Positions 4,541 to 61,962 of a stretch of 64,000 bases of DNA are shown piece by piece. Numbering within the stretch: position 1 is the first letter of the stretch; the number at the start of each line of letters is the position of its first letter. The translations under genes were made by a program, and so were the position numbers. Origin of the DNA: Eutreptiella sp. 'Long Island Sound 2002' (Eukaryota > Protista > Euglenida); NCBI GenBank assembly GCA_964036045.1, contig OZ038378.1, positions 54,560,001 to 54,624,000 on the forward strand. Direction: 5' to 3'. The notes beneath the pieces are model-generated. The model was not told where the DNA came from, did not search any database, and saw only the letters and a list, made by a program, of their open reading frames with translations.

Positions 4541-4544
4541 GGTT

Positions 4545-4802: not shown

Positions 4803-4988
<186 letters not shown>

Positions 4989-5277
4989 TTCTGTATGAGT
5001 GTCTGTTTTTTTCGACTCATGCAGGAACTTTTGATGGATCCTCCCCGGCGACCACGGGCCGCGGAGGGTACAGTGTAACCCTGGCCGGAGGGCAGCCGGG
5101 TCTTGCCAGGGCTGCGCCCCCCGCGACATTTGGAATGGCCAGCCGCGGCAGCGGCTCGTGCGGGGGCTGTGACAGCGGCGGGCAGCCGCACCGTGGTGCC
5201 CTAGAGAAGCAGCACATCACGCGGCACGATAACTGGTGCACTTTGTGAGACGGCCCAAAGGTTCCCGACGCGAAACG

Positions 5278-5715
5278 GGTGGGCGAGGTGCGTGTCATGC
5301 ACAGTGCTTGCAAATTGTCGTGCATTGTGCTTTGCGTAGTGTGCGTGAACCGCCGGAGGAGGCAATGGCAAGGTGACCGGAGGGAGGAGGTTACACAAAC
5401 AACAAACAAAGTGTGCGTGAACCGCCGGCGGGGGCAATGGCAAGGTGACCGGAGGGAGGAGGTTACACAAACAACAAACAAGCCCACAGAACGGGCGCGG
5501 AAAGGGAGAAGGAGAAGTGGGAAATGGTTGCCTGGCAAAATGCACAGCACAGTGCGGACACGGACAGAGGGGGCAGGAGGAGGACGGGGGGGGGTGGGGT
5601 GAGGGCGCCAGGAGGGAGGACACAGAGCAGCCGGGCACAGAGGTAGAAAGGTGAAGACTGGGGCAGGGCAGAGTATGCCTCGTATAGTGTTGTGCACAGT
5701 GTCCTCGCGTAGCGT
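5278..5715 (+). repeat. ~400-bp repeat directly upstream of LHC coding sequence, with an internal 70-bp tandem duplication (5339-5480); paralog at 9137-9495
   Basis: Both copies share GAGGTGCGTG..GTGCTT..CATAGTG(C/T)..CCGGAGG and end with GCAGGGCAG.GT.TGCCTCGTA(T/C)AGTGT. Confidence 0.75.
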
Positions 5716-17261: not shown

Positions 17262-17929
17262 CTCATGGCCACCCATAGCCCCCCGCCCTCCACCCTTGCT
17301 TCCCCACCTCCCACTTTCCCACCTCCCACTCTCTTAGATGGCACAAGTGGAGCGGCGACTGGCTGCAGCTCCTCCAGCAGCAGCAGCAGCTCTAGCACCA
17401 GCACCAGCACCAGCACAAGCACCTCCTCCTCCTCCCGCCGCACAACCGCCAACCGAGGAGTCAAGCGAAGACTCCTCGGATAGGCGGCGGAAGGAGAAGA
17501 AGGAGAAGAAGAAAAAGAAGAAGGAGAAGAGGGAGAGGAGAGAGAGGGAGAGGAGCCGGGGGCATAGGGGGGGGGGTAGGGGCTAGCCTGGGGGGGGGGG
17601 GGTCAAGGATGAGTGGGAGGGGGAAATGGTGGTGGTCGAGGGGGACGGAGACGGGGACGGGGATGGGAGTTCAGGTTGTTGACCCCCCCAATGACCCTCC
17701 CCCCCCTCCCCCAGTGGCTTCTCAAAGCCCTGGGCCCCCAGTCTGCCACGGCCCGGAAGGCGGGGCCGATCCCTTGGTCACCCCAGTTGCTGCAGGAGGG
17801 GTGCGTAGGGGATCAACCCGTTTTTTCCTCCCCCCCCCATAGCCACATGATAGTCATGTGGATTTTTCGGCGGTTGATCCGGTGTTTGATTCGCCGGAAG
17901 GAGGGGGAACACAGAGGCACCTGGGGTAA

Positions 17930-19637: not shown

Positions 19638-20189
19638 ACACACACATGATGCATTCCATGTTGCGTTGTGCCATTGGTAGGAGGGTTAACATTTGGGGAA
19701 ATGAGTTAATATTTGTGACATTAATATTAATGCCGGCGACCCTTTAATTTTTAACTTTTCAAATATTAATGGAAAAATTGAAAACAAAAATTAAAGCCGA
19801 GAGCCACTTTAACATTTTGAAACAACCACATGGGTAGGACCCCCCCACCAACCCCCGGGGGGAAATGACACCCAAGCCCATAAGGCAACCCATGGGGGTC
19901 ATAATTTTCACGGCAATCCCCCTAACCCCCCCTAAAAAAAGTGAAACTTGAGATTACCGTGTTAATTTTTGGCCAGATATTAAATATATTGACTTTAATT
20001 TGGGCCACTAGGGCATGGATTGGGGACTACAAGGCGTACCAAGTGGCAACATTGGGTGCCGAGGGGCATGCAAGGCAGATGTTCCATTGCGACATGAGGA
20101 TCCGTGGTGAAGCCCAACAAAATCATTGAACACCGGGTCCCAACTCTCGATCGGTCGAGGTTCGTGGGCCGCCACAACGTTAGCAAGTG

Positions 20190-38049: not shown

Positions 38050-38870
38050 CTTGATTGTGCGGTTATTTGAGCATTGGCACGTTACCAGGTGTGTTATTCC
38101 GTCCTTTATAATGCGACCCCCCCCCAACCCGCCAAATGCTGCTGTGGTGTGCTGGAGTTTGGTCCGTAGGGTTGTGGTGTATGGGGGTGTGGCGAAGGCA
38201 CAGTTACCAGAAGGCAATGGCCGGGACGTCTACCCACTTGTACATGTAACCGGGAGGGCTCTGCGGGTAGCGTACACACTGTGGGTAAGTGTGTGGATAT
38301 TGGCAGAAAGAGGAGACCAGGGGAAACTTGGAGGTCCCCCATAAGGCGATTGCCGCTTGCCTAGAAGCTCCCGCTGGACTCCCTCTCTTTCCGCCAGCTG
38401 GTGTAGGCGCAGCCCCTACAACACCCACGCCATTGCGCTGTTTGATCCCAAGAGGGCCTTATGCAACGCGCCACTCGCCTTGGCGTGGGCGTACCAGACT
38501 CGGATGGACTCCTTGGTGACATGGCGCAAGAACTCGGTCCCCAGTGTTTGGGGTCCAGAGCACTCCATGTGGGCCCGCTGCATGGAGGAGGTGCGCAGCG
38601 CTACCGCCCACTGTTCCAGAATAGCCGGCTCCCACAGTTGTTTACGCACCGACACAGCCCGACTCCCCACCTTCTGGTCTGACCAGTCCGCGAGTCGCGG
38701 GTGAGCCGGCCTCCACACCTGCTACCAGGCCCAGCAGGCCCAGAGGGGGGGTAGCCATCCACTGCCATCTCATCGGCACTGATTTACTCCGGCTCGTCTG
38801 CCTCCCTAGCACAAGCAGCCTTTTCCACCTGGATCGTGTCAACCCTCTTGTCACTGAGGTGCCAAACATC
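38050..38870 (-). mobile_element. Degenerate non-LTR retrotransposon fragment, RNase H-like
   Basis: AVALRTSSMQRAHMECSGPQTLGTEF resembles the GPQT..RAE RNase H segment; stops present. Confidence 0.4.
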
Positions 38871-39199
38871 CCATTACATATCTTCGGGGGAGTGACAATG
38901 CCTCAGTTGCTCGGGTGCACACAACAGTTCTCCGCCAAGGCGGCGACTGCACCTCACATGGATCCGTGATCCGTCAATATATATTCTATTACATCATATA
39001 TATATATATATATATATGTATATTCAATGATAATACGATAAGGCCAAAAGTAGGGGTCCCGCAAACAGCTGCGGGACCCCGAGGGCAATGCGGAATGGTG
39101 CACCAAATCAAGGTCACCAACCCTATAGAAAGCATGACGCCGTAGGCGATTCCTCTTGGTTACCTCACGTTCACGAACGTGTTTGAGGTTAGTAGTAGC

Positions 39200-41639: not shown

Positions 41640-43958
41640 CGCCTGGTTGCTTATCTCCGCCCGGGTGGCGGGGCAGCGGGCCCACGGGGGAACATTTTGC
41701 CCCGTGGGCAGCGATGGCTCGGAAACCATGAGCGTGGGCGCCAAAGGGGGTGATGACCGCACACAGCCTTTAGTGCACGTCGATGACGTGGACTCCATAA
41801 TAGCCAATCCTTGGCACGAGGATACCCCAGGCACTGCGGTCCGAGTGGAGCTTTCTCTCTCTGGCCAGGGAGGTCTGCCCCCAGCGGGGGATGTGCACAT
41901 CCTGAGGGATGCCCCTCCAGCCCTCCGGGAGGCAAAGGCGCCATCCAGTTTGGGGCGAAGTCCGTCTACAAGATTGACGCGGACACCCCGGTGGAGGTTG
42001 TGGTGGAGGACTCTCCCACCCTCTCTTTAATCCCGGACCCGGAAGCTTCCGGGCATGGCGCCTCCACACTCCCTGCGGCCCCTCCGGGCGATTTGGGGGG
42101 GGGGGGGCTGGGCACACAACGCGCGGGTGGGCGAGCAGGTGCCTCCTAAACAGGGGACGGCGGGGGGCGCCCTTGGCGGCCCCGCGGGATCCGGCCCGAC
42201 GGAGGCCCCTTGTTCGGCTGGAAGTGGATGGAAACCGAGCCTACCCCCTGCGGGAGACCGAGAGGGCGGCACTCGGGCTGTTGAATTCACAGGTCTTGTC
42301 TTATCGCGGGAGCCCCCCGCCAGGCGGGCGTCCAACCAAGGAGCCCCCCCAGCAGACCTATTCGCCGCAAGGGCCGCGTGGATTACTTGACACCCCTGCC
42401 TGCCTTCCGGTACCACGTCCCACAAGGCGGTGCAGCAGCAGCCCAAGGGGAGTACAATCAACCGAGAAAATATGGGATAATCCGCCATCACCGGCCTTTT
42501 GGTGGTCGAGCCGCGTTCTCCCGTTCGGAGGGCGCACCTCTCCGGGTCACCGAGTTCGAAGGGGAGTTGGAGGACGCTCAAGCCACATGTCAAACGCTTC
42601 CGCCCGTAAATGGACGCCACATGAATGAAGTGATGGGGGCCCGGGCGGACCTCCGCCTGGCGGAGAATGATATGGCCATAGCACGCACACACCACGCGCC
42701 GGTCAGTGGGGAGTTGGTGCAGAAATGTCTCCGCACACGCACCTGGAGGGGGGAGGCGGATGTCTAGAAGTGGCGGACGCCCAACGGGCGGCAACGGACG
42801 TGGCCAAAGTGGTGGAGGAGCGCCTCAACCGTCCTCCCCCAAATCTTGCAGGCTATGCACATGGTGCGTGACGAGCGCCCGTCCCAATTTGCGGTGGAGC
42901 AAGCGCTGCGTGGGTGGGTTCCGGAGGGCTAGGGCCCACCCTCAACGTCCCACCGCAATTTGTAGGAATTGAGTGGTTTGCTCGTTCGCGTTGCTATTCT
43001 GCGCGTGGAACCGCCGCCGTCCTTGGCGTCCCTCCCTCGGCGGCTCCAGGTCACTTTGCAACCGTGCCTTCGGTTTCCAACGGAAGCTGTGGGTCGGGGC
43101 CACCATCGAGTCGGGACCGGAGAGCCCTTGCCAAGCCGCCTTTCCCCCGGCACACAAGCGGCGAGATCATGTCCGTGTCGGTCGACATTCTACCGCGGCA
43201 TCTTAGCAGTGAAACTATCGGGCACGGCGGTCCTTAAGAGACTAAAGTTTTTTTTTTGGCAAGGACCGCCATTAAGAACCGCCCCAAACGACCACCACCT
43301 GCGAGCTGCCACCTGCCACCAACCGCCAAAGGCCACCAAACGCGAACCACCAACCGCCAACCACGACCAAATGCCAAACGTCAACCGCTGTCAAACGCCA
43401 CGGACCACCTAGCACCAACTGCCGGCTGCCGCCAACCGCAGCCAACGGCCGCCAGCCACCAACCGCCAACCACCAACCGGCAATCTGCATCAGTCGCCAA
43501 CCGCCAATGGCCACCAACCATGGTTGAACATACGAGCTACACGCGGTCGTGTTTGAAAAAACAATGCTCCGGAACAATTTCTTTTTCTGTTAAGGACAGA
43601 CTTGCCAGCGGGGGGGTACCGGCGAGACCCGTCACACCCAACCCAGCAACGCCTGGTGCTGGCGGTGGGTGGCCCTTCGGCACCCTGGGCCGTGAGGGAC
43701 TCCGCTCCCAGGTGGTGCGGCCAAACGGGGTGGCTCAGGAGGGGTAGTTGGAGGAAGCCCAGAAGTTGCACCTATTCCTAGCCACGAGGGTACATATGCC
43801 GCTGGAGTCCCCACGGAGCAAGCTGCGTAGCCAATGCATGGCCCAGGGCAAGCTCCTTCTCGAGCAGCCCCAGCTGGATCAACTTTTGCAGCCGTATGTT
43901 CCGGAACGCCGTGGAGCCCCCGACCTGTCACCCACCGCGCCCGACGTGTTCGAGCCAG
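41640..43958 (+). pseudogene. Unidentified degenerate coding sequence; continues at 60787-61450 beyond element B
   Basis: ORF 43748 joins ORF 60801 in frame when element B and a 2-bp TSD are removed (PDVFEP-ERAAL-VVAVPKAN); possible chromo-like ADGVLDHIEGNSDKQYTYEW near 61070. Confidence 0.5.
43223..43604. mobile_element. 382-bp hAT-family MITE
   Basis: TIRs CACGGCGGTCCTTAA / CAAGTCTGTCCTTAA resemble those of the hAT at 47785; 8-bp flanks CTATCGGG / CCAGCGGG match at 6/8. Confidence 0.75.
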
Positions 43959-44250
43959 TTTGGTAAAACCGAGAGAGGGGTACCAGGAACCCCCCCCCCC
44001 CCTTCTCGGATTGGGATGACCCCACCTCCAAACCAGACACACGTAGGTGGCCCAATTGGACGGGCGGTGTTTTCATAGCCTCTTGGGTGCCTACATGTAC
44101 AAAACTTTCGGTCCCAGTCCAAACGGCCCAAATGGGCCGTTTTTGTACTTGCCTTCTCGGACGTGCCCGGGGGTTCCCACAAGCACTGTTTGATTGAAAA
44201 CCCCTTCTCAAAGTGACTGCTCGGCCTACTTTCTGATCAGGAACGCTGTC

Positions 44251-46013
44251 TCAAAAAGACTTCTCGGACCCCTTTGCTAATTTTGAACATGCACAAGTGT
44301 CGCAATACATACAATTCCCCAAGTCCATGTTATTCACTTGTGTTCTCTCCTTTTGCCCTCTTCCTATCCTGGTAGATGGGCTCCCAACACATTTCAGCCC
44401 GACATCCAATCCATACATGTTGAGCAAATGCCGCATGCCCCTCACGGAGACACGTGGATTCTTCAGCGACCACCCACGGAGGGTATTTTGAATGTGCAGT
44501 TCATAGGCCGAGTTCCTCGTCTCGGTCGGCACCGAACTACCGAAGTACATTGCGCGGTACTTGCGCACAAACCATCCACTATGGCACACTGTCTAATGCA
44601 CCCATACCGTTGCCTTTCACCCCATCAAGTGCCAACATTGCCCCAATTGTTTGGCCGATCTTTCAGCTTCCTCAACCTCAACATCCGAAAGGTAGACCTT
44701 TTTGCGCCACAAGGTGCGGAGGTGGGTTAGGGCAAGCAACATGGTGTGCACTACGGTGTACACCTTTCTTGACTGATTGGGGGCCTTATGGTTGGGGTAT
44801 TCCTTGAGTAGGTCAACTACTCTTTGTTGGTACTGAATGTCATCTACAAAGACACGCGCGGAAGTTAGGTCAAAGGCATCCTTCTTTGTTGCACGCAAGG
44901 CCACACGGTCTGCTTGAGGGATGTTTTGTAAGGCTTGCATCAAGTTGCCCCACACATCCTTTTGGCAGCCAATCACTCCCCGACCGTGTTCTTCTTGCAC
45001 CAAAGAGGAGAAGTTTTGCTGCAACCTCTTTGAGGTTGCACTGCAAAGACGGGGAAGTGCATGGGCATAGTCCCCAACACGCCGCGGGGGCGGGATGGCC
45101 CGGAGGAAAGCCCCCCACCTCACTTGTTCATTAACCCGCTTTAACGGTTCAAGGCCGTCATGGTCGTCACATGACCAACACTTTCCGTCCTGGGAGTCGT
45201 TGGCGACCCGCATGTCCTTCCCGTCGCCCATCATGCCCACGTCATACCCGAAAACCGTGCCGTCCTCGAAGGGCACACGGCGGTTCGACTGCAAATGTTC
45301 AATTTGGGCGTTGAGCCCTGCCTGGGCGTCCATTACACATAGACGACCACGGTCGTCACTGCTGTGCATGACCCACCACGTTACACAATTGCCTGGGTTC
45401 CCCGCACTGGCCTGGACACCACGCCAAACCGCAACAAAAACATCGCAGCGGGCGGCAACGGCCCGCCACAACGGCGTGGCGTCCATGCATACCGACACGG
45501 GGATCTTGTTCGTGCCCCTGGGGGGGGGGGGGGGTGAACAACCCTTGTTCTTGTGCAAGGTGCACTTGCTCACGTACAAGAAACGCCAAAGACACCCCAG
45601 CTGCCGCACGTTTCTTGCCCCCGTGTCCCCACACACTCACGGCCACGGCATCGTACGGCGTTATCGCAGGCCTTGCCTCATAGAACTCATCAGAAGTGCA
45701 CCTACGACGCAACCACGATGTCCGCTGCATAGACAGCTGCATTGCACGAGCACGGCGCAACACATCAACGGCATATCCGTTGACGTTAGCAGCCGCCCAT
45801 CACCTCCCCTGCATTCTCCATAGTGCCACCCACCAAGGAAACCACACTGGTGGCATCGCGACGAAAAGACACCTCCGGAACCTGGAGGATTGCCCGCACC
45901 ACGAGCTGCGCCAGTGCCAGCCACTCATGTAGCTGGTCTGGCCGAAGTTCAAAGTAGGGCTTGCGTAGCATTTTGCGAGCCTCAGCCTCAAAGGATGCCC
46001 TCATGCGGACCAT
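44251..46013 (-). pseudogene. Element B RAG1/Transib-like DDE transposase
   Basis: VCMDATPLW (D1); MMGDGKDM (D2); KCWSCD; RVGDYAH; TVWVH*TVCH; E lies 20 residues after the second His (VPTETRN), as for RAG1 H942-E962. Two Trp-to-stop changes and frameshifts. Confidence 0.85.
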
Positions 46014-48098
46014 CTAGAAAACATAGGCACCTGGTGTCCAAACAGGAAGTGCCCGGTAACCCCATTTCAAGAACCCTTTTCTGATCAGGAACACTACCGG
46101 GAGCCCCGTTTCAGGAAGCCCTTTCTGATCTGGAACCCCTTCCTGGATTGACTTCTCGGGTAAGTTTCTCATCAATCAAGAACCCCTTCTCATATTCACT
46201 TCTCGCATAACTTTCTGATTTGAGGCCATGCGCTATTCCTCAGGACTACTGCTTCATGTTCCAGACGTGTTACCGCTCTGCATGAGACACGTGCACACAC
46301 CCCCCTCCCTCCAAGAACATACTCCCTGAAACAAACACGCACAACCTTCCTTCACCTCTTTGCTTGACGATGGTCCAAGTGTTGACACTTTTTGCCCAAA
46401 AGAAGATGTGTACAAAAGAGACAGACAGTGGAAGCCAGCTGCAACAAACCTGCTGCAAGGTGGGCAACATTGTGCACAATATCCATAGAGGTATATATAT
46501 GGGCGTACTTGTGGGCGCACCTAGCTGCCGCGCACCGTGTGCTCAACGGCTACCTAATGACGCACAGGCGCTATTCCCGTCACCAAAACCCGTGACTGCC
46601 CCTAACCCCCTCTCCATGAAGCATGAGATGCACACGTGTTTACCGCCGCTGCACTGTGTGTCACATCTATCACATGTAACCGTGGTGCTCGTCCTACGTC
46701 GTACACTTTGAGTACACCTTTTCCCAGGGAAAATGGCATCCAACTTTTTGATTTTACTTGAGAGGGTCGCTACGACTTTTCCTCGTGGTTTTCCGAGTGG
46801 GTCGTGTAGGGGCAGCCTACACGAGCTGCGGGTAAAATTACGGGCACCCTTGACGGGTCATCCGTGTAGGGGCAGCCTACACAAGCTGCGGGTAAAATTA
46901 CCTATTGGCTAGGAGCTGCCTGCGGCGGCACGATAACCCGGACAAGCGGTTTGGGGGGCCTCTTCCGAGTCGAAGAAGGTCCCCGCACAACTGTCCTGGT
47001 ACTTTGCCACTCTGGCGGCTCCGCTAGTCCTGGACCCCTGCAGTCATACCGCACCTCATGGGTCCGGGTGCTGCCATCGGGTGCAGCGTCAGGCATGGCG
47101 GGCAGAAAAAAAAGGCAAAAGAAATATGGTATGTCAGAATGTCTCACAATGTATCACAAGCAAAACCCAACTCGATTAACATCGGCTCGTTTTGCAAAGA
47201 AAAGCGGCTTTTGTCCATGTCCCTGGATGACCACACCAGTCCCCGTGTCGCTCTTCCCTCCTGGCATCCTAGGAGGTTAGCCGCGCCGCCGGGGCTCCGC
47301 GGACTGTTTTTCCGAAAGGAGAGGGGTCGGTTGGTGGTCGTCCAAAATAAAAGGGAACGAAAAAAAGGAACCAACTGTTTTGCCTTCTCCATTTGGGGGG
47401 GGGGGGGGGGCTTGGGGGAGGGGGTCAGCATGGTCTATGGTGTATGCGTCACAGTTTTATCGGGCATAACAATGAAAAGATCCTGCAAAAGTGGATAGGA
47501 CATTAATTATCACAAAAGGGGCATGCCGGTCGGATCACAAAAATTCAGTTTCCTCGCTTTTGAAAATTGGCAGGGTGGGGTTACAGGGGTTGGGGCATAA
47601 CGGCTAGCAGGTCAAACAAAAAGGTACATAAAAAAATTCTCCGGAGCATCATGTTCCTTTACCTCTTTTTCAGGAAGGCAAAGCCTACACAAGCTGCGGG
47701 TAAAATTACGGGCATGAGGTGCAGAAAGACAGGATGAGGCCGACAACCCCCGCCCCTCAAAGTGGTGTATTCCACCACCATACCCAGGGCCGTCCTTAAC
47801 TCAAAAAAAAAAAAGTGGTTCCAGAACCAGGTAATTTCAAAAGAGCCCGCGGACAGTACATGTCTTCACCCCGGTGTTCCCAATGGTTCAACCATGAGTC
47901 CCTAGCCCCAAATTGCTCTCAGCACACAACCATATGATCCTAGCCCCACATGTGTTGCATGATAGAATCAGAACCCTACGTCACACCCTGCACAATTCAA
48001 CATGAACAAGGACAATACTTTTTCTGATCAAATACAGTGCTGCAGCGTTCGACCACCCCAATGTTCCGTCGCCGGTGGCACAGCTAAAAACAAACTCC

Positions 48099-49559
48099 CT
48101 ACTGCTGGTACAACCTCGGGAAGTGCACCCTGACACGCTCCATAAGCTCGCCCTTCCCCCCGCTCACACTCAAACCATGCTTCCTACAAATGGCCTTGAA
48201 CTCAACTTTAGTCCACTCTTGCAACCTCCCCCTCTCCATTGCCTTCAACACCGCCTCATCCACATCATACCGAAACACCAACTGCGCGGCAGGGTTAGAA
48301 GAGGTGGAGGGGACAGCCGAGGGGTTACGAAGGTCAGAAGAGGAGCTACTGCCAACTGCACCTGCTCCAAATCCTCGTCCTCACTGTCTTCGTCCTCACC
48401 CTCCAACTCAACCCCATACACATCGCCAATGTCGGCGTCACGTGTCGCCCTTTTGGGGACAACCCACAAATCTCGTATGTCCAACGGAACCTCTGGCCGT
48501 CACATAGCTAAAAACTCTCTCACACGAACACGAGCTTGCCTCAACCCAATCCTCCAGGTTAGCACTACCATCCCACTCAGTTCGCTTGAATCGTGTCTGC
48601 ACGTCCTCAATCAAATTGCGAAGAAAATTCATCCGGCTACCCTTGATGACGCTACTCCCTACGTCAACACCCAACGATTCCTCCCACCCCCCTGGAATGA
48701 CATGACGCGTGGTGTGCAACAGCTGCGTGCATATCACGTTCATCAAACCCTGCACGGCGGCGACCCGTGGCCCCTTGGTCGCTTGAACTTTCTTGCTTGT
48801 GGCACAAACCACAGCAAAAACATCGCAAAAAAAGGCCGCCGCCAACTTGAAGAGGGGGTGCGAAAGTGCATCGAACAAGCCCTAGGCCTTCTCCCTCCGC
48901 CCCAGGTCAGCCTCGTGACTAATGTACTCGGGCAAGTGTTCCAGAACAGCAGGCCGATTCTCTAGCACAAGATCCAGCTCGTGGAACATCGCTTCCACCC
49001 AACCCACACCAGTGCGGCGGGAGAAACAAAACTTCCCCCCCTTGCGCCACAACCCCCGCATGCGCTTGGAGCTGGTCTTGTAGAAGCAGGCCAAGAAGGA
49101 CACCAAATCATCCAGTGCATCGTACCACAGCTTGACCTTTCCCTTTCCCGTGCTGATCGGTCGCATCAGGCAATGTGCCGCATCCTTCGCCCAACCAATG
49201 AGTTCCTTCCCCCCTTTCTCCCTTATATCGTTCGGCAGACCCATATAGGCACCCATAGTGCCGGCACCATCCGAGACCACTGCGATGATGCGCTCCTCGA
49301 TCACCTTCCACTCAATGCCTAGCTGGTCAAACACCTTCCGGACGGTGTCATCGTACAGTTGAGCATTCGCCACATCAGGGTCATCATCGGCGGTTTCACT
49401 CCCTTCCCCCCCCTCCCTCCCCTGGGGTCGCACCATGTGAGCAAGGCCAACAAAAATTTCTTCCTCTGGAGTGCGCACAAAAACTGCAAGTGGCTCACTC
49501 TTGGCCCCCCTTCGAGCGCCAGCATCCAGCACAATTGCAACCTTCCGTGCTCTCAACAC
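48099..49559 (-). pseudogene. hAT transposase (N-terminus lost) with a C-terminal SAP-like motif
   Basis: VAIVLDAG (D); AVVSDGAGTM (D); DAAHCL (CxxH position); SCSCERVFS (E); WTKVEFKAICRKHGLSVSGGKGELMERV. Confidence 0.85.
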
Positions 49560-49580
49560 ACGGTTCCTTGTTCGCCGGCG

Positions 49581-49910
49581 AAATGGCTACCTCACCCCTG
49601 CCGTATCAGGGATCCCCACAGCTTCAGAGCGGGGAGCAAAATCAGAAGTGGCCCACAAGTGGGCAAAATGGCTACCTCACCACTGCCGTATCGGGGATCC
49701 CCACCGCTTCAGAGCGGGGGGCAAAATCAGAAGTGGCCCACATGTGGGCAAAATGGCTACCTCGCCCCTGCCGTATCGGGGATCCCCACCGCTTCAGAGC
49801 GGGGGGCAAAATCAGAAGTGGCCCACAAATGGGCCAAATGGCTACCTCACCCCTGCCGTCTCGGGGATCCCCACCGCTGCAGAGCGGGGGGCAAAATCAG
49901 AAGTGGTGCC
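49581..49910. repeat. 85-bp tandem repeat, 4 copies, replacing the hAT 5' coding region
   Basis: AAATGGCTAC at 49581, 49666, 49751 and 49836. Confidence 0.95.
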
Positions 49911-50327
49911 CAAAAGAGGTCCGGGGGGGTAGACATGGCCCGCGTTCGGTCGGGGCAAAAAGGCCTCTAGGGCTGTCCTTAAGGGCTGTCCTTAACAAAA
50001 AAAAGACTCGTCCCTTAAGGACGGCCTTGACCATACCCCCTTCCATCCTATGACTTTTAGGTACTGAAACATGTTCCCTATGCCAAGGGGACCCCCTGGA
50101 CACCGGTGCCGCCATGTGCGCACGCCCCATGCGTATTTCGGAAAACCCCACGACAGCCCGAAGGCAGCCCTTGTCCTCACGACAACCCCCCTATCTTGGT
50201 TCGGCTGTCTTACGACACCGCCGTGTCTTGACACTTGTCGCGAACCCCTGTCCTAAGACAGCCCCCTGTCTCGGCACTTGTCCCACAACCCTGTCGGAAA
50301 GCACCATTTTGGATTTCATCCATCTCC

Positions 50328-52005
50328 TTAAGCCTTTCGTCGTCCGATGCGTCGCTTCTTGTCCTTTGTGTCCTGCAACGCATGCCACATCCGCAAGCCC
50401 ACGTCAAGAGGATCAAGCTTCAGTACACGGGTGAATGCTTGTGCACTAAAATAGGGGCGCAATATTTCATAACTAGAAATGAACGGCGGGTGTCCATCTG
50501 AAACTCCACGTTACGCCTTTCCGTGGGGATGCTGGAAAAAAATCCAAATTGCGGTACTCAGCCGCAAACCACCCAGAATGGACACATGTCCAATGTACCC
50601 ACACTGTGGGTTGCCATTGCAACGCACGCCAATCGTTGGCAAACTACCCCACAGCCCGCCTATACGACTCCACCTCCTTATTGGTCAAACGAATCTTGCT
50701 CGACCACCACTTTTCCATATACCACAAACTTAGGAGCATGCGCTGGATCACGGCATGCAGGGGGATGCTTGTCCCGCCTACAAACACAAGCTCTTGAGGT
50801 CCCACATGCTGTTGAATAAGCTGCACAACTTTCGCGTGGTTTGCCTGATCTCGGGCAAACCACCTTCCCCCCGCTAGATCAAAGATACCGTCCTTAGTGG
50901 GCCGCGGTGCGTCCTTGAATTCGGATGGGATGTGGGCGGCTGCTTGCATCACGGATTGCACTACATTCCGCAGCAAAGGGCCGAGGGCACGGGCTTGTGA
51001 AATGCGGCCATCCGAACATAACCTTTTGAAAATTGCATTTACTATTCTACAACACCAATGTACCATGTCTCCAACACGACGTGTTGGGGGTAGGGAAACG
51101 AGGAAAGCCCCCCGTCGGATGGAAATTATAAAATCAGTAGGGCGGAAGATGTCACCTCCAAAATCCTCAAATGCAAGGTCACAATGCCAACAACGGCATT
51201 TAAGTTTCGTGTGCCCAGTGCACATCCTTTTCCCATCTCCCGTTAACAACCATTCCACCTCAACGGTCACGGTGGGGGTGGCAATCGCATTGCGTTGTAG
51301 CTCACCCACCTGGGCATCTACTTGCCCCAACTTGTCGGCTAGACGCAAGGGGTTGGCATCATCAGATCCATCGAACGTGAACCACGTGGACCACAAACTA
51401 GGCCTCCCCAATATCTGCTAGTCGTGGTACACGTCCCCACGTGTGGCACTTGCCTTCCAAAGAGGGGTGGAATCCACACAAACGACATTACGAAACTTCG
51501 GAGGTGCGCGGCCTTGGGGTTGTTGCATGTAGTGCAACTTCACGCGTTGCTCCACCACGTCCCGGACGTTGAAGAGGGCCCCGCGAAGAGCAGGTCCCGC
51601 ACTGGGCTTGAACACCACCGGCTGTGCCTCGTAGGGGATGAGGGCTTGGCGCACCTGTCGTAGGGTGGTCCTCCTACATGTCCTCGGGAGTTTGTCCAAA
51701 TTGCGGACAGAGACTTTCATCCATCGGAACTGGCCCTTCAACAAAACTGCCTCCTCCTCACTCTCGTCGCAGTCCTCAAACTCCCCCTGTAGCCGCAGGG
51801 TGTGATGCCCTTTGGTGTCCGTGATGATCTTGGTGGGTTTTTGCACAATTGCCGTGGCGGCTTTCTCAAGCATGCGCAAGCGCTCATGGCGCCATCGGTT
51901 GGACAAAGTCCGACTAGGTCCCAAGTGAAGCTTGGCCACACTAGAGCATAGGGTGTCAAGAATGTCAGACAGGCTGTCAGAGGCCATTTTCGTGTCATCA
52001 AACAA
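50328..52005 (-). pseudogene. Element A RAG1/Transib-like DDE transposase
   Basis: VCVDSTPLW; LLTGDGKRM; RCWHCD; RVGDMVH; PTVWVHWTCVHSGWFAAEYRNLDFFSSIPTERRN; in-frame stops at 51418 and 50644. Confidence 0.87.
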
Positions 52006-52865
52006 TGCAACACCATGCAGCAGGTAACGAAAGCCATAACTTTCTCACACGGTGTGTTCAAGGCAGGTTAATAAGACAGGGGTCATGACACGGGTCTGTC
52101 TCAAGACAGGTTACCAAGACAGGTACTAAGAAAGGGGGGCTGTCGCCGGACAGACCCATGTCTTAGTAACTATCTTGGTGACCTTTCGCCGGGCAGCCCC
52201 ACTGTGTTAGTACTTGTCTTTGTAACCTGTTTTGCGACATGCCCCTGTCCCAACCCCTGCCTCGGTGTGCGGTCGTGGTTTCCCATCACCTTCATTCTCG
52301 GTGCATGTAGAGGAACCAAACTTCCACCCCCCCTGCAGTACGGTGGGATACACCCTTTTTGCATTGTGATCACGGCAAGCATCAGTGTTGCGTACATTCC
52401 ATTGCATGGCGCATCGATTGTCATTCCGTGCTGCACTACCACATTGCAACTCGGGTTCAGTTCATATTGCTTCTATGGTCTTTAAAGGAAGCTGAGCACC
52501 GTGGCACAACGAATTCTGCCGTCGGCTGACCGTAACGCCACCAATGCAAACAAACGAAAAAAATGTATATCAGGCTCACATAGTGGAGCCACGTGACGAC
52601 CAGGTAACACAATTCAAAATGAAAATCAGGCACACAGATTGAAAAATGTTGCACACTCTGTGCGACTCATGCAAATTGGGATGGATGCATTGACACACAC
52701 CCCTCCCCCTGGTGGAGGAAGAGGGTTGGTCACCTCCCTATATCATAAAGACCCTGCCAGGACCCCCAGGTAGGGGGTGACGGCAAAGTGTTCCTGGGGG
52801 AAAGGGGACAGTGCCAATGCTGAAAAAACCCAAAAGGGACAACCTTGCATCGGAGTGGATTGGCC

Positions 52866-54000
52866 TTATTGGGACTGTGACTGGCTCGTACTGCCCTTCG
52901 CTGCCATGTACTGATATAGTTCCCGCCATTGTGCTGTCATCTCCTTCTGTGCAACAAGTTGCGTTTTCAGGGTCTCCGCCAGGCTCTGTCCTTGGGCCAG
53001 CCGGCCTTCGAGCTCCACCCGGAGACCCTTGTCGTGGTTGACTTGCACCATGAGCTCTGAGACCTGCACCTCGGCCTCCGCGGCTTTCTTCTTGGCCTGC
53101 TCGAGCGCTTCCTTCAAAGGGCCTACGACCTCCTACTGCTTGTCATGATGCTTCCGGTGCTCCTCGAGAAGTTCCTCCTTGAGGGCAGTGTGGTGCTCCT
53201 TCTTGAGTGCACGGACCTCCGTGGCATGCGCCTCCCTAAGCACCTTGATCTCCGTGGACGCAACCCCCTTTGTGGGGCGTGGTGATTGCTCCTCCCTTGC
53301 ATCGCACCTTGTCGACAACACCAACACCTCCAACAGGCTCCTGGTGGTTTTCCGCTTTTTTTGTGAGGTGTACATCAGAGTCCGAATCCCCTGTGTCTTG
53401 GGCCTCCTACTTCTCCGATTTGACTTGCACCACCTCGCGTTCCCGTGACTGGAACTCATTCTCCAACGACGTGCGCACGTGGTCCGCGACTGGGTCTCCC
53501 CCAAAGGTCGTAAACTTCGACAAGCTGGTCCAACTGCTGAGGTTCCATATGTAGTTCAAAGGGGCCTGCACGAGGAATCGCTCCTTGATCTGCATCTTAC
53601 CCCCTCTGCGAGGCTGAGTTGTGCACCGCACCACTGCTTCGAGCGTGGCGGTTCCGTGCCAGGCAGAGCTATTGACGTCAATGGGCAACTTCACGTCGCG
53701 CGGCTTGAGATGGCCCTCGCTGTCGCAGAAGGTTAAGACGGCGCTCTTGTAGTACACGGTCGCCCCCTTCGACTCCGACACGGCATCCGACGGTGTCCGG
53801 ACCACTGCACTGCCACACGGTACCGGGTCCGTGGTCTCCTCGCCCGACATGAGCGGGACTTCCCGCAAGAGGGCGGCTTGCGGCGCCCCATCCTTCTGCC
53901 CCACATGCTTTTGCCCCGTGTCCTTAAAACCCTCATCCTTGTTGCTGACGAACGGAACGAAACGGCGAACTCTGCGGGCGACAACGGTTGTCACGTCCAT
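52866..54000 (-). pseudogene. Element A gene 2: unknown N-terminus plus C-terminal coiled coil
   Basis: Frameshifted ORFs 53407-54180, 53133-53504 and 52866-53117 with heptad-like E/K/L/A-rich sequence. Confidence 0.6.
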
Positions 54001-54299
54001 GGCCGGAAGAACACCCGCTGAGGCCTGAAGTGAAAGAGCACGTAAGGACAAGGGGGCGCAACAGGGACTGCGACAAGCAACTGTCGGACGACGGGCACTT
54101 GGGACAGGGCAGCAGAAGGGGTGGCTGTCGTGGGAAAGGGCATGAAGACCGGGTACAAGAAAGGGTCTGCCTTCGGACAAGGGGGCTGTCAGTAGGGCTG
54201 TCGTGGTGGGCTATCGCGGGACACGGGGCTGTCGTGATGCTTGTCGTAGGCGGCTGTCGCAACACACGGATGGCAATCGAAATTAGCAAACGCGCGTTG

Positions 54300-56392
54300 T
54301 GCGCAGCGTGGGAGTTTTCTAGGTAGTGCACCTGCTGGCAGGCACCCGTCCACTGCACTGCATCCTCCGTGTAGCTCTCGTTGCTACCAGACTGGGCCTT
54401 GTTCCCCTTCTTTGGTGTTGCAACCTTGGAAACCCTTGAGAATTGTTTGTCCCGTGAGGTGATCCAGCCGTAGTACCGCGCCATACGATAATCCAAGAAA
54501 GGCGTTTGCGGGTGAACAAGTGTGCACAACAAGAGGCGAGCGCGTGTGGCTGGGAACTACGGATCAGGAGGACACCGAACAACAAAGCCCCCGAACTGTA
54601 CGTTGCGAAGAATGATACTCACACCCACGGGAACGTGAACCATGGCGAGGACGGTGTCGAAACCCGTGGCAGTGATGGAGTTGCCATGGCAAAACTGACG
54701 CAATGCACAATGCTGAGAACTGGGTGTAGTGTCCCCCGTGCTCCTCACTTCCATGACTGCCCGAGGCATGTCAACCAACGTGAGGCACAAGTGGGTATTC
54801 TCGTCGCACAACATGAAGAAGCTTGCCGTACCGGGTAGACTCGGGGTGTCCGTGACCCTCTTGGCCTTGAATTCTAAGAGCCAACCTGGGTTGGTGCGGC
54901 ACACCCCACAACAACCAGCAGCCTGGGAGCAGCTCCGGCATACCAGCTCTTCTTGACACAACGTGCAAGGGGACCGTTTGCCGGCGCTTTGCTTCTTGTT
55001 GCATCATGTGCATGGTCCGATTTGACCAAGATCCTCACGCGGAGGGGGCATGGTGCAATCAAGGGGCGACAAAACTGGATATCCGGCACAGTGGGTCACA
55101 TGATGTGTCCCAAAGCCGATAACAATGAGGACCAACGGCTCGTACATACCGCTGCGCTTCCCAGGAAGGCGAACAATGCAGTCCGATGGGCAAATCAACA
55201 ACTCGCCAGCCACGGTGGGGAATGGCAACCTGTTCCATGGCTGCGGCAAACCCCCAGAACCGAACGGGACGGAGTACACGTTCGTTGTACTATCCGCCGC
55301 CTATGACCCAACAACCAGAGTGTAGGACGTGAGGAAGATCCCGTCGTCAGGAACCAGGCGTCTTTGAACTTCACGATGAACCGGCCCCTGTGATTCATTG
55401 AGAAGGCGTACAAAGTTGACGAACAAAAGGTGGAGCTGCTTTTGGGCACCCGCAAAGGACGTTGGCACCATGTCAAGTTACTTCATGGCAAACCCACGAA
55501 CTTGTGGTAAAGGAGCCGTGTAAGCATGAAAAAGACTTGTCACTTCCTCTGCCGAAAAACGAGACACGTCCTCAAGGTACAGATCTTGATGAGGGGGCTT
55601 CACTGCGACGGTCTCCCATTGAAACTTGTTGCGGGCCGCCCTGGCCTCTTGTCCTACCTCGTGGATGATGTTGATTGATTCTTGAGCGAGAACGTATGAC
55701 TAGCGTCGATCGTTGTCCTCCCCATGTGCCTCCAGCGGTGTGGTACAGTCTGCCCCCTTGACGGGGTCGTCGGAAACGCCAATCAGGAGTGGTGGTGGTA
55801 GGGAGGGGATGGTGATGGGGTCGTTGTTGTGCGTCACCCATGGCCTAGCGGACGTTGTTCCTGGCCCATGTTCACTCCATTGGTGAGGGGAGTCGCTGCA
55901 GAGGGAGTACACGGGGCTTGACATACTTGGATCCTTCTCCATGGACAGGCAGAGGCAGTGCTGCAAAGGTCCTTGCCATGATGTGTTTTTCCGGGAGGCC
56001 CCTTGGGGGACATCTGCTCGGAGGTCCAGACACCAATCGTCATCCAAGTTCTCAAGGTACACCATCTCCTTGCGGCCATCCGCATCCACGGTAGCTGGGG
56101 CATACTCAAATAGGTGCACCAAGCCTTTGCCACTAGGCCGTACCACCACCAGCTGCAGAACTAGGTTCCCTTTGAGAATGTCGTGGAGGATGTTGCTGAA
56201 GCACCCGGGGGATCGCTTGGCGGTGAACGCGGGCAGCATCTGGACATCCGCCATTGCACCATCACATTGCACCTGCATACTCTCCCTTGCGAGGATGTAA
56301 TGCGTGGGCATTTTGGTGGCAGGAACCTCTGCTGCCCCCGTCTTGGCCCCAAGACTGCCAATCCACCCCTTGGCAAGGTTGTCCACTTTTGG
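54300..56392 (-). pseudogene. Element A gene 1: degenerate 2OG-dioxygenase-like domain plus Cys-rich region
   Basis: GPVHREVQ..VPFGSGGLPQPWNRLPFPTVAGELLIC aligns with B YHCDM..LPYGCEGLPRP(W)DPIPISLRRGELVV; followed by PCT*C..PCTLC..VCRSC..CCGVC. Confidence 0.6.
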
Positions 56393-57094
56393 CATTGCAA
56401 AGAGGACACAGGTGCTGATACAAGACAGGTAGCGCAGACAGGTTTCAAGACAGGGGGCTGTCTGTGGACACGGGGTGAAGACAGGCTTTAAGACAGACAG
56501 CTGTCGTAAGACAGGTGGCACAAGACAGGGGGCCTGTCGTCGACAGACCCCCTGTCTTGTGCAAAGACAGGGGCTGCCATTAAAAAAAAAATTGGCCAAA
56601 ACGCAAGCACACAACGCAACCACTTGTATATTCGGGCTAACTTCACCTTCTTGACCGCACAAAAACCGCAAGAACATGCACACGTGCGGGGTTTGGACTG
56701 CCAAAAATGTGCTATGGCAAGGGGGGGGGGCTGTCGGCCTCATCCTGTCTGGCGGCACCACACACCCTTGATGGGTCGTCCGTGTAGGGGCAACCTGCAC
56801 GTGCTGCGGGTAAAATTACGGCCACCCTTGACGGGTCGTCCGTGTAGGGGCAGCCTACACGAGCTGCGGGTAAAATTACGGGCACCCTTGACGGGTCGTC
56901 CGAGGCAAACACCGGGTCAAAACACCGTGGAATCTTACGCTGTATTTTACGGTGCGTTTCTCACAGGGTCCCAACCCCCGCCCCCCAACGGGGAAAAAGG
57001 CGACACATGATTTTGTCGTAGGCCGGGCGCTACGGTGACATGTGTTCGCACTGCGGGAAGGGGGGGGGGTGGAGACTTCATGCACGTTATACTG

Positions 57095-58117
57095 CTAATT
57101 CCTTCGCCGACCCTTGGACGTTGGTGAGGAGATCACGTTCTGCGTCTCACGGGGGCTGTCCAGGCCCATGCCTTGCCTGCCCCGCATGGGACTATTACCA
57201 CCAAGATGGTCCACCAGTTGCCACAACCGGGTCGCGTCTGCCAGCCCGCTCTTGCACCTGCACTGCATTGTCACATTACGATCGCACCCGTGAGTTTTTC
57301 TCCGTGAGATCCACCACATTCGTCCGAAGGCCCGCTGTGTCTGTGTTTGCCTGATCCGCTGCTTGTTGCAAAAAGTCCACGCTGCACTGCAAATAGTAAA
57401 CCAATTGGTGGAGAGTGTCCTTCTCCTTGCCAAAGACGTGCAATCTCGGTCTCTTGGGACCGTGGCTTGGTTTTTACACCCTTGTTGGACAACCGCCCTT
57501 GCGGCAAGTGACACCGGTGCGTAGAGGTCATCAACAATGCGCTGGTCAAGGGTCCCAGCGACCTGGCCCACCTTGTGATCATGCTTTAGCTTGCTCCCTT
57601 TGCATGGTGCCAGCATTGCGAAGGCCGGTTCGTCGTTCCCTTCATCGTCCACCGCCACATACGTGCAGACGCCCAAACTCGCCAATTCTTGCTTGTGCTT
57701 ACACTCCAACTCCTTGTGATGTGCACGTCGCAATGCCGGCGTGGACACCTCTGGACACCCCACAGAAGACAAGGAGCTAATCATCTTTGCAGCCTGGCGG
57801 ACCTGCCGCCCATCCCCCCGGCAAATGTGTCCGTACTTGCCAGACTTGCCATAAGCAAACGTTGTGAAGAGCCAAGTACCAAACCCCGGGGCATCGGTGT
57901 TCTCGTATACCACATGCAGCACACAGTTGAGCTTCATGAGGTATGTGAGGTATGTGTGAGCCATTTGATACGCAATGTGCACTGCTTGTACCACTTCGTG
58001 GTTCCCTTGTCGCATAATGCACTCTGACACAGCCCGGATCCTCACCGATGCCTTCGGCAGTATCACCCAACACACATGGGGGCCTGGTCCAACCCGTGTG
58101 ATGTGCATCTGGGGCAC
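57095..58117 (-). pseudogene. Element B gene 2: unknown N-terminus plus coiled coil
   Basis: 340-aa ORF with a frameshift; paralogous to 13500-14200. Confidence 0.65.
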
Positions 58118-58479
58118 TTCCTCCCCTTCTGGTCAATCCTGCGCTGCTGGCCCATCGCCCATGGCTGATTGCTGATCCACCACCAGTGTCGGCTAGACCT
58201 CAACGCTGACCTACAGGGGCAAACTGGCGTGACAAGGAATGCAGGGGGTTCTGGGATGAGATCAGGAACCCCATCAAGAACCCAAACTGAGAACCCCTTC
58301 CTGAGGAGGAACCGTGCTGAGAACCACATTTCAGAAACCCGTTGCTGATGACGAACTCCTTCGCAAACGCACTTCTCAGCCGACGGTATGAACAGGAAGC
58401 CCTTCGCAAAGCACCTTCCGGGCGAACTTCCTGATCGCATGCAAGACCGATGTTCACCACTAAAACCCTCCTGCATATC

Positions 58480-60500
58480 ATGTCACGCATAGGGCGCTAC
58501 ATTCAAAACCCGCCTGCATGTGCACCAGTAGGCTCCATCCTTCAATGTCTCTGTCAGCCCGCTGCATGTCAGCCCCATGCGGGGGTTCAGCATTGGCTGT
58601 AGTGGACGACCGATGTCCTAGCGCACGATGGAGGCCTGCTCGTCGTCTGGGCCCATGCCGAAGCCACCAAACTGGCACCGCACTGCCATAATGTACCCAG
58701 GAGGAACCGTGCTCACCGTGATGTTCTGGTTCCTGGGCGAATCCTATGTCTTGGCGTCGTGTGCCTATGACCCGAGCGGGCACTTATCCCACCTGACATT
58801 ACAATGATCATCCGGTCGAAAAGGGTTGGGAGGGGGTGCTGGCGGGGGTACAAGGCAAGGTGCGGTGTGGAGTTTAGGGCCAGAAGCAGACATGTGACGC
58901 CGACTAGAAACCCCACCACCTAAGGTGCACTAGCCGCCCCACTCGCCTTACTACCCCTCGTGAGTGGCACATAGCCTTGGCACTCCACAACTTAAGCAAT
59001 CCTTCGTGGCTTTCTTCCGACAACCCAAGATGATACACCACTCCGGCCCATCAATGTCATGGCATTCCTCCTAACCCCAAGACGGAACGCGAACTCCGAC
59101 TGTGTACGAGTACGTGACGGGAATAGTGGCAATGCCCAAGAAAAGCACTCGTCTCCACCATGAATTTGGCTCGGAAAGAGGCGTACACCCGCCCGCATGG
59201 ACTAGGTAGCTGTACAAGACGACCAACTCACCGCGTCGTAGCGAAATGGGAATAGGGTCCTATGGCCGGGGCAACCCCTCACAGCCATATGGCAACAAGA
59301 CGGTCTCGGTGCCATGAACGGAATACAAGTCCTCGTCCAAGGCCACAAAGACGGACACAACCCTCTTCCCATCACGAACCTTCAACATGTCGCAATGGTA
59401 GGACGACAGTTGACGCCCCTTCGCATATAGTGTGGCTGCTTGGTACGCCTTGTGGTCCCCACTCCACGTGTTGTTGAACAAGCCGAGAACGAAGTTTGTG
59501 AATGACATTCGGGCCTCACATTCATGGCATCCAACACCGGAGCCTTCTACGTCAACATGAGGAAGTTGTAGGGCAAACATGGTTCTATTGCTCGAGTCCG
59601 GGCGGCGGTGAATCGCGGGAAACTCATTTAATACGGGATCCCAAGTGTCGCATGGTCGAGTTTCAAGGGCTTCCACAACCTTATCACGAATTTCCATGGG
59701 CACCACACCTTTCCACAACAAGTCTGCCGTCCCATCAAATTTGCTTGGGTCTTCGTTGGGGGTGAACTCCGAGCGCAATACAACAACTCTGGGTGCGTCT
59801 CCCACACCAACCCATGCCAACCGGCATTGCCTGGGTAGTGCCACAATTTCCCCTGCCATATGGGATGGGGTCGCAATGCCCTCCACCGGATCTGCAAAGG
59901 CAAGTCCGGAATTGGTTGCCAAACTCCGAACCGGAAAGGTGTCTCTCTAGGAGGCCGGCAATATACCCTCCTTGTGACCAAATGGGGCACTTACAAAGCC
60001 GGGACGTGTCAACTTCGAGGGGCTCGGCTTGGTGCTTGCGAAAACCACACAATCGTCCGCATCCTCTGCAATCCAATTAAGCACGACCGTTGGGTTCCCT
60101 TCCCTTGGCCTTGTTCTTCGACTTTGGAATGTGCGGCAACATCCCCGCAACAAGGATCGTAACGTCCGCACTACTGAGGTGGATCAAAACGGCCCGAAGT
60201 GTAGGCTTGACCATGAAGGTGGTGTGAACCAAGTCACTAACGAGCCCAGGCCCCATCTCTCCAAGACCACTCCGCGCCGCCTCGATAAAACCTGACGTAG
60301 TCCCTAGATTGAACTTGGCCCTTGCGGCTAGCCCGGTGATACGGACGGTCTCCTCCTCCACTTCCGTCGGGGCGGCGGCGATAAGAAGGGTGCCCGAGCG
60401 ATCATAGGCTTCACACAACCAACGACCAATGACGGGGGGGGCACGGGCATGGGGGTAACTAATGGACCAAATGTGCAAAGGAGACGAAAGTGGAAAAGTG
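58480..60500 (-). pseudogene. Element B gene 1: 2OG-Fe(II) dioxygenase-like domain (HxD...H...R) plus Cys-rich region
   Basis: YHCD at 59389-59397; VVSVFVALDED; GELVVLYSYLVHAGG (His at 59197); WWRRVLFLGI; then CLSCGVPRLC. Confidence 0.75.
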
Positions 60501-61962
60501 ATGGACGCACGCACCAAATCAGAAACCCCCCGAGAAGGCATTTTGGGAACCCTTTTCGCATTAGGAAGGTAAGCGGAGAAGTCCGGAGAAGGAGTTCGAG
60601 AAGGGGTTCTTGGGTTTTCAGAAAACCACGCCTATATTGTTGTACCCTAAACCCAGGGACAGCCCCCCTTAGTTTTAATCCCCCGAACGCGTCAAGTTGG
60701 CCCGCTATACCTCGAGGGAGAGGGTCCCCGAGAGGCGAATTTCGGGTGAGGGGTTCCCGGTACCAGCTTCCCAGTTGCACCACACGAGAGGGCGGCCCTA
60801 GTGGTGGCGGTCCCGAAGGCCAACCGGGCTAGGGCTCGCAGCAAGTTGTGGGGGCGGCGCAAGTGTGGTGCGGGCTGCGACTCCTGTTTCTTGTCATTGA
60901 CGGTACGTTGGAAGGCAAAATCTTGCGACCCCCCTAAGGCTATTTGGCCACTATCCCTGGGACGGCTGGGCATGGATCTCAAAAAGTCCTCTGCAGGCTT
61001 CGGCATCTCCTATACAAAGGACGAGGGCCAACTATATAGAGGAAGGGGGACGGGCCCTCGTGGGTTTGCGCCCCGAAGCGGATGGTGTCCTGGACCACAT
61101 CGAGGGAAACTCGGACAAGCAGTACACCTACGAGTGGACCAAGGCAACCCGCGAGCCGTATACAGGGTGCTTGTTCAAGACGCACTACTTGGAAAGCAGC
61201 AACACAGCTGCACAGTGGTTCCGCGCCGGCGAGCTGCTGGTGAAACCAGATGGGTCGCACAGCCTAAGGGTCAGGACAGGGGCGGAGAGGGTCGCGGGAA
61301 ACCTCACCACTCCCCGTCCTTGCCTCCTCCCGGCCAGCCCGCGAGACGGAGGGCAACTACACGCCCAGTCAGGGGTAACAATCTACCTGACCCGAGGAGG
61401 AACCCATCCGGGGCGGTCACCGGCATACGCCTCTATACACGGTTGACACGAGGGAACACCGATACGACAATCGGAGACATTCGGACCGCCGTACCCCCAC
61501 CCGGGGGGAGCCCGGACGACGGTGGTTGCCCCGTGAGGACACGTGGGATCAGACCGCAAACCTCACGGTGCACAAGGGGGATATGGGGAGTGGGGGGCCT
61601 TTCGTCGCCTCGAGGCGTACCCCCCAACGTACGCACTCCCACCGCCGTCGGCGTACTCGAGTCCGGCGGTGGATCCTCGGTACCCGAGGAACAACGAGGC
61701 GGGATCTGGCGGGGCCTCTATCCCCTCTATGCGCCAGCCCCGAAGCTGCCGTTCGAGCGGCTGCCCTACGCGGCCAGCCCTCCGAATGTGGAGACACGAA
61801 CTTCACTGGGCTATGCAGGGGTCTGGTACAGGGAGGCAACTACAATGATGAGGAGGGCACGGGCGCCACACTGGCAGCTGCGGGATGCGGGGGGGCGGTG
61901 AGGGCGTGGAGCGAGCAAGAGTGGGTGCACATGTGGCACACTAAGGGGGCTGTTATCCGCTG

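Follow-up and report, generated by a model that had tools for sequence, protein, structure and literature searches.

CMCT, a clade of DNA transposons, brings together EnSpm/CACTA, Mirage, Chapaev, Transib and Plavaka as well as ESTA and Lanisha, and is defined by a DDE transposase with a set of 2C and 3H motifs and by target-site duplications (TSDs) of 2-5 bp (Kojima 2025, PMC12730594). Among its lineages, PlavakaA has 2-bp TSDs and 5'-TGT..ACA-3' termini, ESTA has TA TSDs and was recognised via an HHpred match to RAG1, and several lineages in fungi carry TET/JBP dioxygenase genes (PMC12730594). In Transib and the RAGL elements the TSDs are 5 bp long and the TIRs start with a CAC heptamer (PMC9435367). 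Here we analysed a window of 64,000 nucleotides from the euglenid Eutreptiella sp. 'Long Island Sound 2002' (contig OZ038378.1, positions 54,560,001 to 54,624,000; positions below count from the first letter of this window), which holds two decayed DNA transposons, element A (43959-60784) and element B, nested within A. Our results suggest that these elements probably represent a lineage within the CMCT clade that lives in protists and is as yet unnamed, with three genes, a 2-bp TSD and the mechanism proposed below. No paper on such elements in euglenids was found in the literature.

As listed in Table 1, A and B share the layout that the original prediction had described for two diverged, nested elements on the same strand. 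Each has three minus-strand genes, for a PhyH-like dioxygenase with a Cys-rich part, a coiled-coil protein and a DDE transposase, and all six genes are pseudogenes with stops or frameshifts. When A was compared with B by tblastx, the transposase was the sole gene in common. The two elements are about 31% identical and represent two deep sublineages, each nearer to environmental sequences than to the other. Long G/C homopolymer runs are frequent in the window (e.g. 42095-42107, 45520-45533, 47395-47410 and 57057-57069), and the run at 45520-45533 coincides with the frameshift in the A transposase; some of the apparent frameshifts could be homopolymer assembly errors.

To characterize the transposase, the genes of A and B were read through their stops, and showed the motifs DATPLW/DSTPLW, GDGK, CWxC, RRVGDxxH and WVHxxxxHS. 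A search with a family profile (hmmsearch) recovered the A transposase in pieces with E-values of 1.4e-88, 3.5e-25 and 7e-15, covering profile positions 10-472, and that of B in pieces with 3.4e-67 and 6.4e-30 among others, covering positions 3-478. An exhaustive phmmer search with the 339-aa piece from A as query found at least 253 cluster representatives at 50% identity (E<=1e-3). Full-length family members, 500-576 aa long, derive from metagenomes and from run assemblies, and not one of them is named. The signature D, D, CxxC, DxxH, HxxxxH, then E 20 residues on, occurs in both copies and is conserved across 17 members, and the E at this distance from the second H can be seen in the translated transposase of A. 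In the family member P0001 these residues are D196, D281, C296/C299, D332/H335, H491/H496 and E516. Its H-x4-H-x19-E spacing equals that of RAG1 H937/H942/E962, and H491, H496 and E516 lie no more than 5 residues from their RAG1 equivalents by aligned ranges.

The predicted fold was in agreement with these motifs. In an AlphaFold model of P0001 (pLDDT 82), D196 is placed in the first strand of an RNase H-like fold and D281 after the fourth strand. When this model was searched against the PDB with Foldseek, all 49 matches at E<=1e-3 were RAG1, BbRAGL or HzTransib, the best being RAG1 at 3.5e-12, with HzTransib at 9e-7; the next fold, Hermes, followed at 2e-2. VIA-align gave Z scores of 21.1 for RAG1, 19.5 for BbRAGL, 15.9 for HzTransib, 15.3 for the P element and 8.6 for Hermes, and its RAG1 alignment spans 426 residues (model 90-567 vs RAG1 458-1008). 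Against Swiss-Prot models, RAG1 391-1021 aligns to P0001 model positions 36-576. By language-model features, the nearest named clusters are RAG1 families (0.92). Among Atlas structures the model lay at a similar distance from several groups, with TM-scores of 0.58-0.69 to clusters of Transib-like, Plavaka and nematode DUF1280 type and to unnamed clusters from cnidarians, rotifers and Mucoromycota; Plavaka clusters scored 0.61-0.64. For another family member, Plavaka clusters reached 0.72 and those of Transposase_21 (CACTA) 0.75-0.77. The RAG1/Transib-type transposase first read from the letters of the window is therefore borne out by motif pattern and fold alike, and the best PDB matches are of RAG1 type and not to an unrelated DDE family.

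The boundaries of the elements were established from their terminal inverted repeats (TIRs) and flanks. B extends from its left end, TGAGGTGC, at 47715 to its right end, GCACCACA, at 56762, with TIRs of about 45 nt (the arms given by the repeat finder are 53 nt long and 81% complementary). A ends on the right in ...GTTGCACCACA at 60784, and its left end at 43959 is degenerate. The consensus ends of both elements are TG(T/A)GGTGC...GCACCACA, the left end of B beginning with TGA. The predicted TG(T/A)GGTG ends were found not only in A and B but also in six other loci (L001, L002, L004, L005, L007 and L009), of which L001 and L002 are environmental contigs encoding distant family members.

B is inserted in a 60-bp satellite, which provides an internal empty-site control for its TSD. 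Intact units read ACGGGCA-CCCTTGA, and the interrupted unit reads ...ACGGGCA, then B, then CACCCTTGA; because the interrupted unit could be compared with intact ones, it is clear that B duplicated exactly CA. The same TSD length was observed in two other copies of the same genome, TT/TT in L004 (7055-13571) and AA/AA in L009 (5142-11719). A 2-bp TSD is thus present in three of three well-kept copies (B, L004 and L009), the third flanking base never matches, and the three targets have no common consensus. The 2-bp duplication predicted for both elements therefore held for B, and failed for A. The satellite was not seen in the other fetched loci. Left of B its array is broken by about 775 bp (46907-47681), in which a lone end-like motif, GCACCTCA, is found at 47052-47059.

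We then compared the window with other copies. An ENA assembly, evidently of the same genome, contains the window's open reading frames (ORFs), 100% identical, together with tens of other copies. L004 is a compact element of 6.5 kb whose 44-nt TIRs are 91% complementary, and the L009 element has an intact transposase ORF at 9761-11347 (529 aa). Both L004 and L009 hold the dioxygenase, gene 2 (the coiled-coil gene) and the transposase in the same order, between one TIR pair with one 2-bp TSD. A aligns with L004 end to end at 78-81% nucleotide identity (78-84% with L009 included), and between L004 and L009 the identity is about 87%; some 1.3 kb of A, satellite included, has no counterpart in L004 or L009. 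A blastn search with the leftmost 40 nt of the left TIR of L004 picked out TIRs, 85-95% identical to it, in L005, L007 and L009. The canonical element is about 6.5 kb long with TIRs of about 40 nt. In A-type copies its genes lie on one strand in a fixed order and encode a PhyH-like Fe(II)/2-oxoglutarate dioxygenase whose tail is Cys-rich, a protein of some 340 aa with a coiled coil at its end, and a transposase (500-576 aa). The search for intact genes was also successful: L006 holds gene 2 and an intact transposase of 556 aa (P0196), and L005 holds gene 2 and an intact dioxygenase of 560 aa (P0226). Rearranged copies are common in the fetched loci.

The dioxygenase was traced in both elements with the PhyH-type gene of L001, a metagenome contig with a TGAGGTGC end, a transposase and this dioxygenase gene. 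By tblastn it matched A at 60057-59077 (E 2e-14), B at 55915-54932 (E 4e-7) and, elsewhere in the window, a fragment at 15439-14897. The L001 dioxygenase lies above the threshold of Pfam PhyH (PF05721; 27.9 bits vs a cut-off of 22), and P0226, to which the A pseudogene was aligned, aligns in turn to the L001 protein (E 4e-28). The HxD...H iron ligands read YHRDM...LVHAGG in A-type copies, WHRDL...IHRGG in L001 and HCD...H in A itself. A Tet_JBP domain was not matched by Pfam in any dioxygenase copy. The dioxygenase cargo proposed from the window alone is therefore a recurrent one, linked to the transposon in the independent copies L001, L004, L005 and L009. Gene 2 of A was recovered with a profile made from the same-genome copies P0189-P0192 (E 5.7e-87); better-kept copies of this gene in the same genome have a clear coiled coil at the C-terminal end, and its Pfam matches are to generic coiled-coil models only.

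Within each element the core of that element's own TIR recurs, as AAGACAGG in B and as a GAACCCCTTCTC-like motif in copies of the A type. These motifs form arrays some 200 bp in from either end, the two in inverted orientation, and also upstream of the transposase gene; A and L004 have an additional array upstream of gene 2. AAGACAG sites are concentrated in B, which holds 12 of the 14 in the window. TG..CA termini were found at none of the internal arrays. Subterminal repeat arrays are ordinary in CACTA-type elements such as En/Spm, internal arrays being less usual, and the subterminal arrays of this family are a likeness to the CACTA members of CMCT.

Table 1. Coordinates of elements A and B, their parts and their insertions in the window.
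Feature	Position	Strand	Remarks
A left TIR	43959-43993	+	degenerate, TTTGGTAAAAC...GGTACCAGGAACCCC; 25/35 positions match the reverse complement of the right TIR
A left subterminal array	44186-44267		GAACCCCTTCTC-like TIR core; direct-repeat families D4/D7; same arrangement in L004
A transposase pseudogene	44254-45799	-	frameshift in C-run near 45520, in-frame stops; family-profile hmmsearch
A internal array upstream of transposase gene	46053-46219		families D4/D6/D7; L004 equivalent 11363-11403
Extra DNA in A	46803-47714		60-bp satellite units (46803-46906, 47682-47714) around a 775-bp stretch; repeat families D2/D5
Element B	47715-56762	-	in satellite; TIR pair I3; TSD CA at 47713-47714 and 56763-56764
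B left TIR	47715-47757	+	TGAGGTGCAGAAAGACAGGATGAGGCCGAC...
hAT-like element in B	47785-50029	-	TIRs CAGGGCCGTCCTTAA / TTAAGGACGGCCTTG, 15 nt; outside the three-gene unit
B left subterminal array	50179-50300		CCTGTCTT orientation, inverted vs 56437-56540; pair I1, 104 nt, 73% complementary
B transposase pseudogene	50331-52044	-	in-frame stops 51418 and 50644, 3'-end frameshifts; family-profile hmmsearch
B internal palindromic array upstream of transposase	52059-52262		AAGACAGG motifs; inverted pair I2, 69 nt, 80%
B coiled-coil ORF pieces	52869-53555	-	gene 2 position; frame translation
B dioxygenase-like pseudogene	54932-55915	-	Cys-rich tail; iron-binding motif degraded
B right subterminal array	56421-56575		about 9 AGACAGG copies
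B right TIR	56720-56762	-	...GTCGGCCTCATCCTGTCTGGCGGCACCACA
Satellite array, continuation	56763-56902		right of B
A gene 2 pseudogene	57098-58132	-	N-terminal domain of unknown fold and frameshifted C-terminal coiled coil
A internal array between dioxygenase and gene 2	58273-58435		families D4/D6/D7; L004 equivalent 9586-9638
A PhyH-like dioxygenase pseudogene	about 58900-60450	-	HCD...H kept; Cys-rich zinc-finger-like tail; two in-frame stops
A right subterminal array	60529-60624		D6, I11
A right TIR	60750-60784	-	...GGTACCAGCTTCCCAGTTGCACCACA

In order to place the family, its features were set against those of the described systems. The CMCT motif set, in which the DDE residues are joined by C(2)C, by an H conserved behind the second D and by H(3-4)H ahead of the E, is present both in alignment A1 and in P0001 (where the conserved H is H335), and the 2-bp TSDs of B, L004 and L009 fall in the 2-5 bp range of the clade; a dioxygenase gene is also carried by some CMCT lineages. 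The termini differ, being TG..CA and not the usual CA..TG, and no Pfam model of a CMCT lineage was matched. EnSpm/CACTA in particular does not fit, with no PF02992 match, TG..CA ends and a TSD of 2 bp vs 3 bp. The fold of the whole core (Z 16-21 to the Transib, RAG1 and ProtoRAG structures 6PQN, 4WWX and 6B40), the zinc-binding CxxC and HxxxxH with the E 20 residues past the second H, a spacing identical to that of RAG1, and the proximity of RAG1 families in language-model features would all suit a true but divergent Transib, sister to or member of the lineage behind RAG1. Such elements, however, have 5-bp TSDs and CAC-heptamer TIRs (PMC9435367), whereas the family has 2 bp and TGTGGTG and lacks a RAG2-like gene; identity in the structural alignments is about 12-14%, the Pfam RAG1 domain models found no match, and for HzTransib the score is no better than for the P element transposase. 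The family thus fails the Transib definition on two tested features, TSD and ends, and fits the CMCT umbrella; the elements are therefore probably CMCT and lie outside Transib in the strict sense, and we consider membership of Transib, or of the lineage behind RAG1, very unlikely. A related proposal, that the family is no offshoot of CMC or Plavaka but an ancient protist sister lineage of Transib/RAG1 which kept the RAG1 core and joins its ...CA-3' ends to target 2 bp apart, with the PhyH-like dioxygenase and the coiled-coil protein as obligatory partners in transposition or anti-silencing that read the element's own motif arrays, is conceivable, but we regard it as doubtful. The family might also be a branch of Plavaka in protists, closest to PlavakaA and hence a new member of a named lineage: PlavakaA shares the 2-bp TSD and the TGT..ACA termini (though B begins with TGA), and Plavaka has identical C(2)C/H(3-4)H motifs and, in some cases, a gene for a dioxygenase (PMC12730594), its clusters being among the nearest structures. 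Yet none of 45 aligned members matched the Plavaka model PF18759, or PF02992 or a RAG1 model, at E<=10, the structural distance to Plavaka is not below that to the Transib-like and DUF1280 clusters and the unnamed ones of cnidarians and rotifers, the host is a protist and not a fungus, and the dioxygenase carriers in Plavaka are PlavakaB, with a TET/JBP and not a PhyH-like enzyme, none being reported for PlavakaA. We therefore judge a place within Plavaka unlikely.

The unity of the element could also be questioned, in that the dioxygenase and coiled-coil genes might have been inserted separately or captured from the host, with motif arrays of their own on either side of each. Motif arrays do flank each gene, the internal array of B is palindromic, L001 has another gene order and many fetched copies are rearranged. 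Against this, in L004 and in L009 a single TIR pair with a single 2-bp TSD encloses all three genes, A aligns to them end to end, the internal arrays have no TG..CA termini, and the dioxygenase is linked to the transposase even in L001, a distant environmental relative; separate units are thus extremely improbable. An unnamed three-gene lineage of the CMCT clade remains the probable reading. The original statement that the combination of features fits no superfamily was overstated, as the CMCT clade covers the motifs, 2-5 bp TSDs, TGT..ACA ends and dioxygenase cargo (PMC12730594). As for an undescribed lineage of the CMC/Transib clade, the lineage is indeed unnamed and matched no named family by sequence in the Pfam scan of 45 members; the clade itself had been described as CMCT. 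What is new is the lineage, which has a protist host, a PhyH-type rather than a TET/JBP enzyme and a coiled-coil partner gene. The fungal KDZ and CMCT transposons with TET/JBP genes offer a parallel, being cut-and-paste transposons that stably carry a gene for an Fe(II)/2-oxoglutarate dioxygenase; theirs is TET/JBP, for which the family gave no match, and that of the family is PhyH (PF05721, in the L001 orthologue).

Several observations weigh against our reading of the family. No Pfam model was matched by the raw ORFs, by 10 full-length relatives or, even at E<=10, by 45 aligned members, and a profile search of PDB sequences gave no match. Because no structure of CMC, Plavaka or Mirage has been solved, a ranking of PDB matches does not tell Transib apart from the wider group, or 'Transib-like' from 'CMCT in general'. 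The correspondence to RAG1 D600/D708/E962 comes from motif spacing and aligned ranges and not from a residue-level superposition. A is flanked by AG and CG, a mismatch that leaves it with no clean TSD. Gene 2 of A and that of B, although in the same position, showed no similarity by tblastx or profile search, so that their homology is not demonstrable. The intact A-type dioxygenase P0226 was not found at E<=1 by Pfam PhyH, and the AlphaFold model of the dioxygenase has a pLDDT of 33. In L001 the transposase lies upstream of the dioxygenase, a gene order different from that of the A-type copies. The search for transcripts that had been suggested found no RNA runs holding the sequence, and every functional role given below is inferred.

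On this reading, the DDE site, backed by the CxxC/HxxxxH zinc module, would cut the element ends by a nick-and-hairpin route like that of RAG and Transib, and the ...CA-3' ends would be joined to target DNA 2 bp apart. The coiled-coil protein or the N-terminal domain of the transposase may bind the motif arrays and pair the ends, by analogy with TnpA at the subterminal repeats of En/Spm. The dioxygenase might serve the element at the level of chromatin, for instance by countering silencing, in the way proposed for TET/JBP in fungal transposons.

Some further copies and junctions were observed. In L002, a right end directly abuts a left end at 3416-3430 (CACCACA, then TGTGGTGC), followed by arrays of a GTTTCC motif; we do not take this junction as evidence for an excised circle, as the two sides share 7 terminal nt only and the contig has no terminal overlap. 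L003 contains at 4181-5892 an internally deleted A-type derivative of 1.7 kb, whose right TIR is good and whose left end reads CATGGTGCAAC; CA is found on both flanks, and its left boundary is ambiguous. The window itself has a third, fragmentary A-type copy at 13569-15563 and 20016-20096, with 66-72% nucleotide identity to A 57249-59383, followed by an inverted piece matching A 59386-59580. This inverted piece is itself split by an unrelated element at about 15565-20013, which has a different DDE-like ORF pair at 15725-17261.

The hAT-like element in B is complete and is bounded by a perfect 8-bp TSD, ACCATACC, at 47777-47784 and 50030-50037, and contains a transposase remnant at 48438-49559 and an 85-bp tandem repeat at 49577-49906. 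The top named Atlas clusters for the remnant were all hAT RNase-H-like (DUF659, ZBED1 and DUF4371; scores 0.81-0.90), and Pfam gave no match to it. Without this insertion B is about 6.8 kb long. Directly left of A, at 43220-43604, there are related GTCCTTAA...poly-A motifs. A 103-bp candidate for a miniature inverted-repeat transposable element at 38855-38957 was dismissed as chance, with only 9 nt of TIR in common and mismatched flanks, and Rfam found nothing in the window.

In summary, our results add to the transposase group that includes RAG1 a large unnamed branch of at least 253 clusters at 50% identity, which has a protist host, tens of copies in the genome, many members in environmental assemblies and intact ORFs that can be tested. 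To this the window contributes a TSD controlled by an empty site and a nested pair from two deep sublineages. In this branch there is a second and independent example of a transposon of this kind that carries a dioxygenase gene along, the first being TET/JBP in fungal elements. An enzyme of RAG1 fold with TG..CA ends and a 2-bp duplication also bears on how this fold sets the spacing of its target. If the family were indeed a sister of Transib and RAG1, the target-site spacing and the end sequence of RAG-type enzymes would be evolutionarily plastic.

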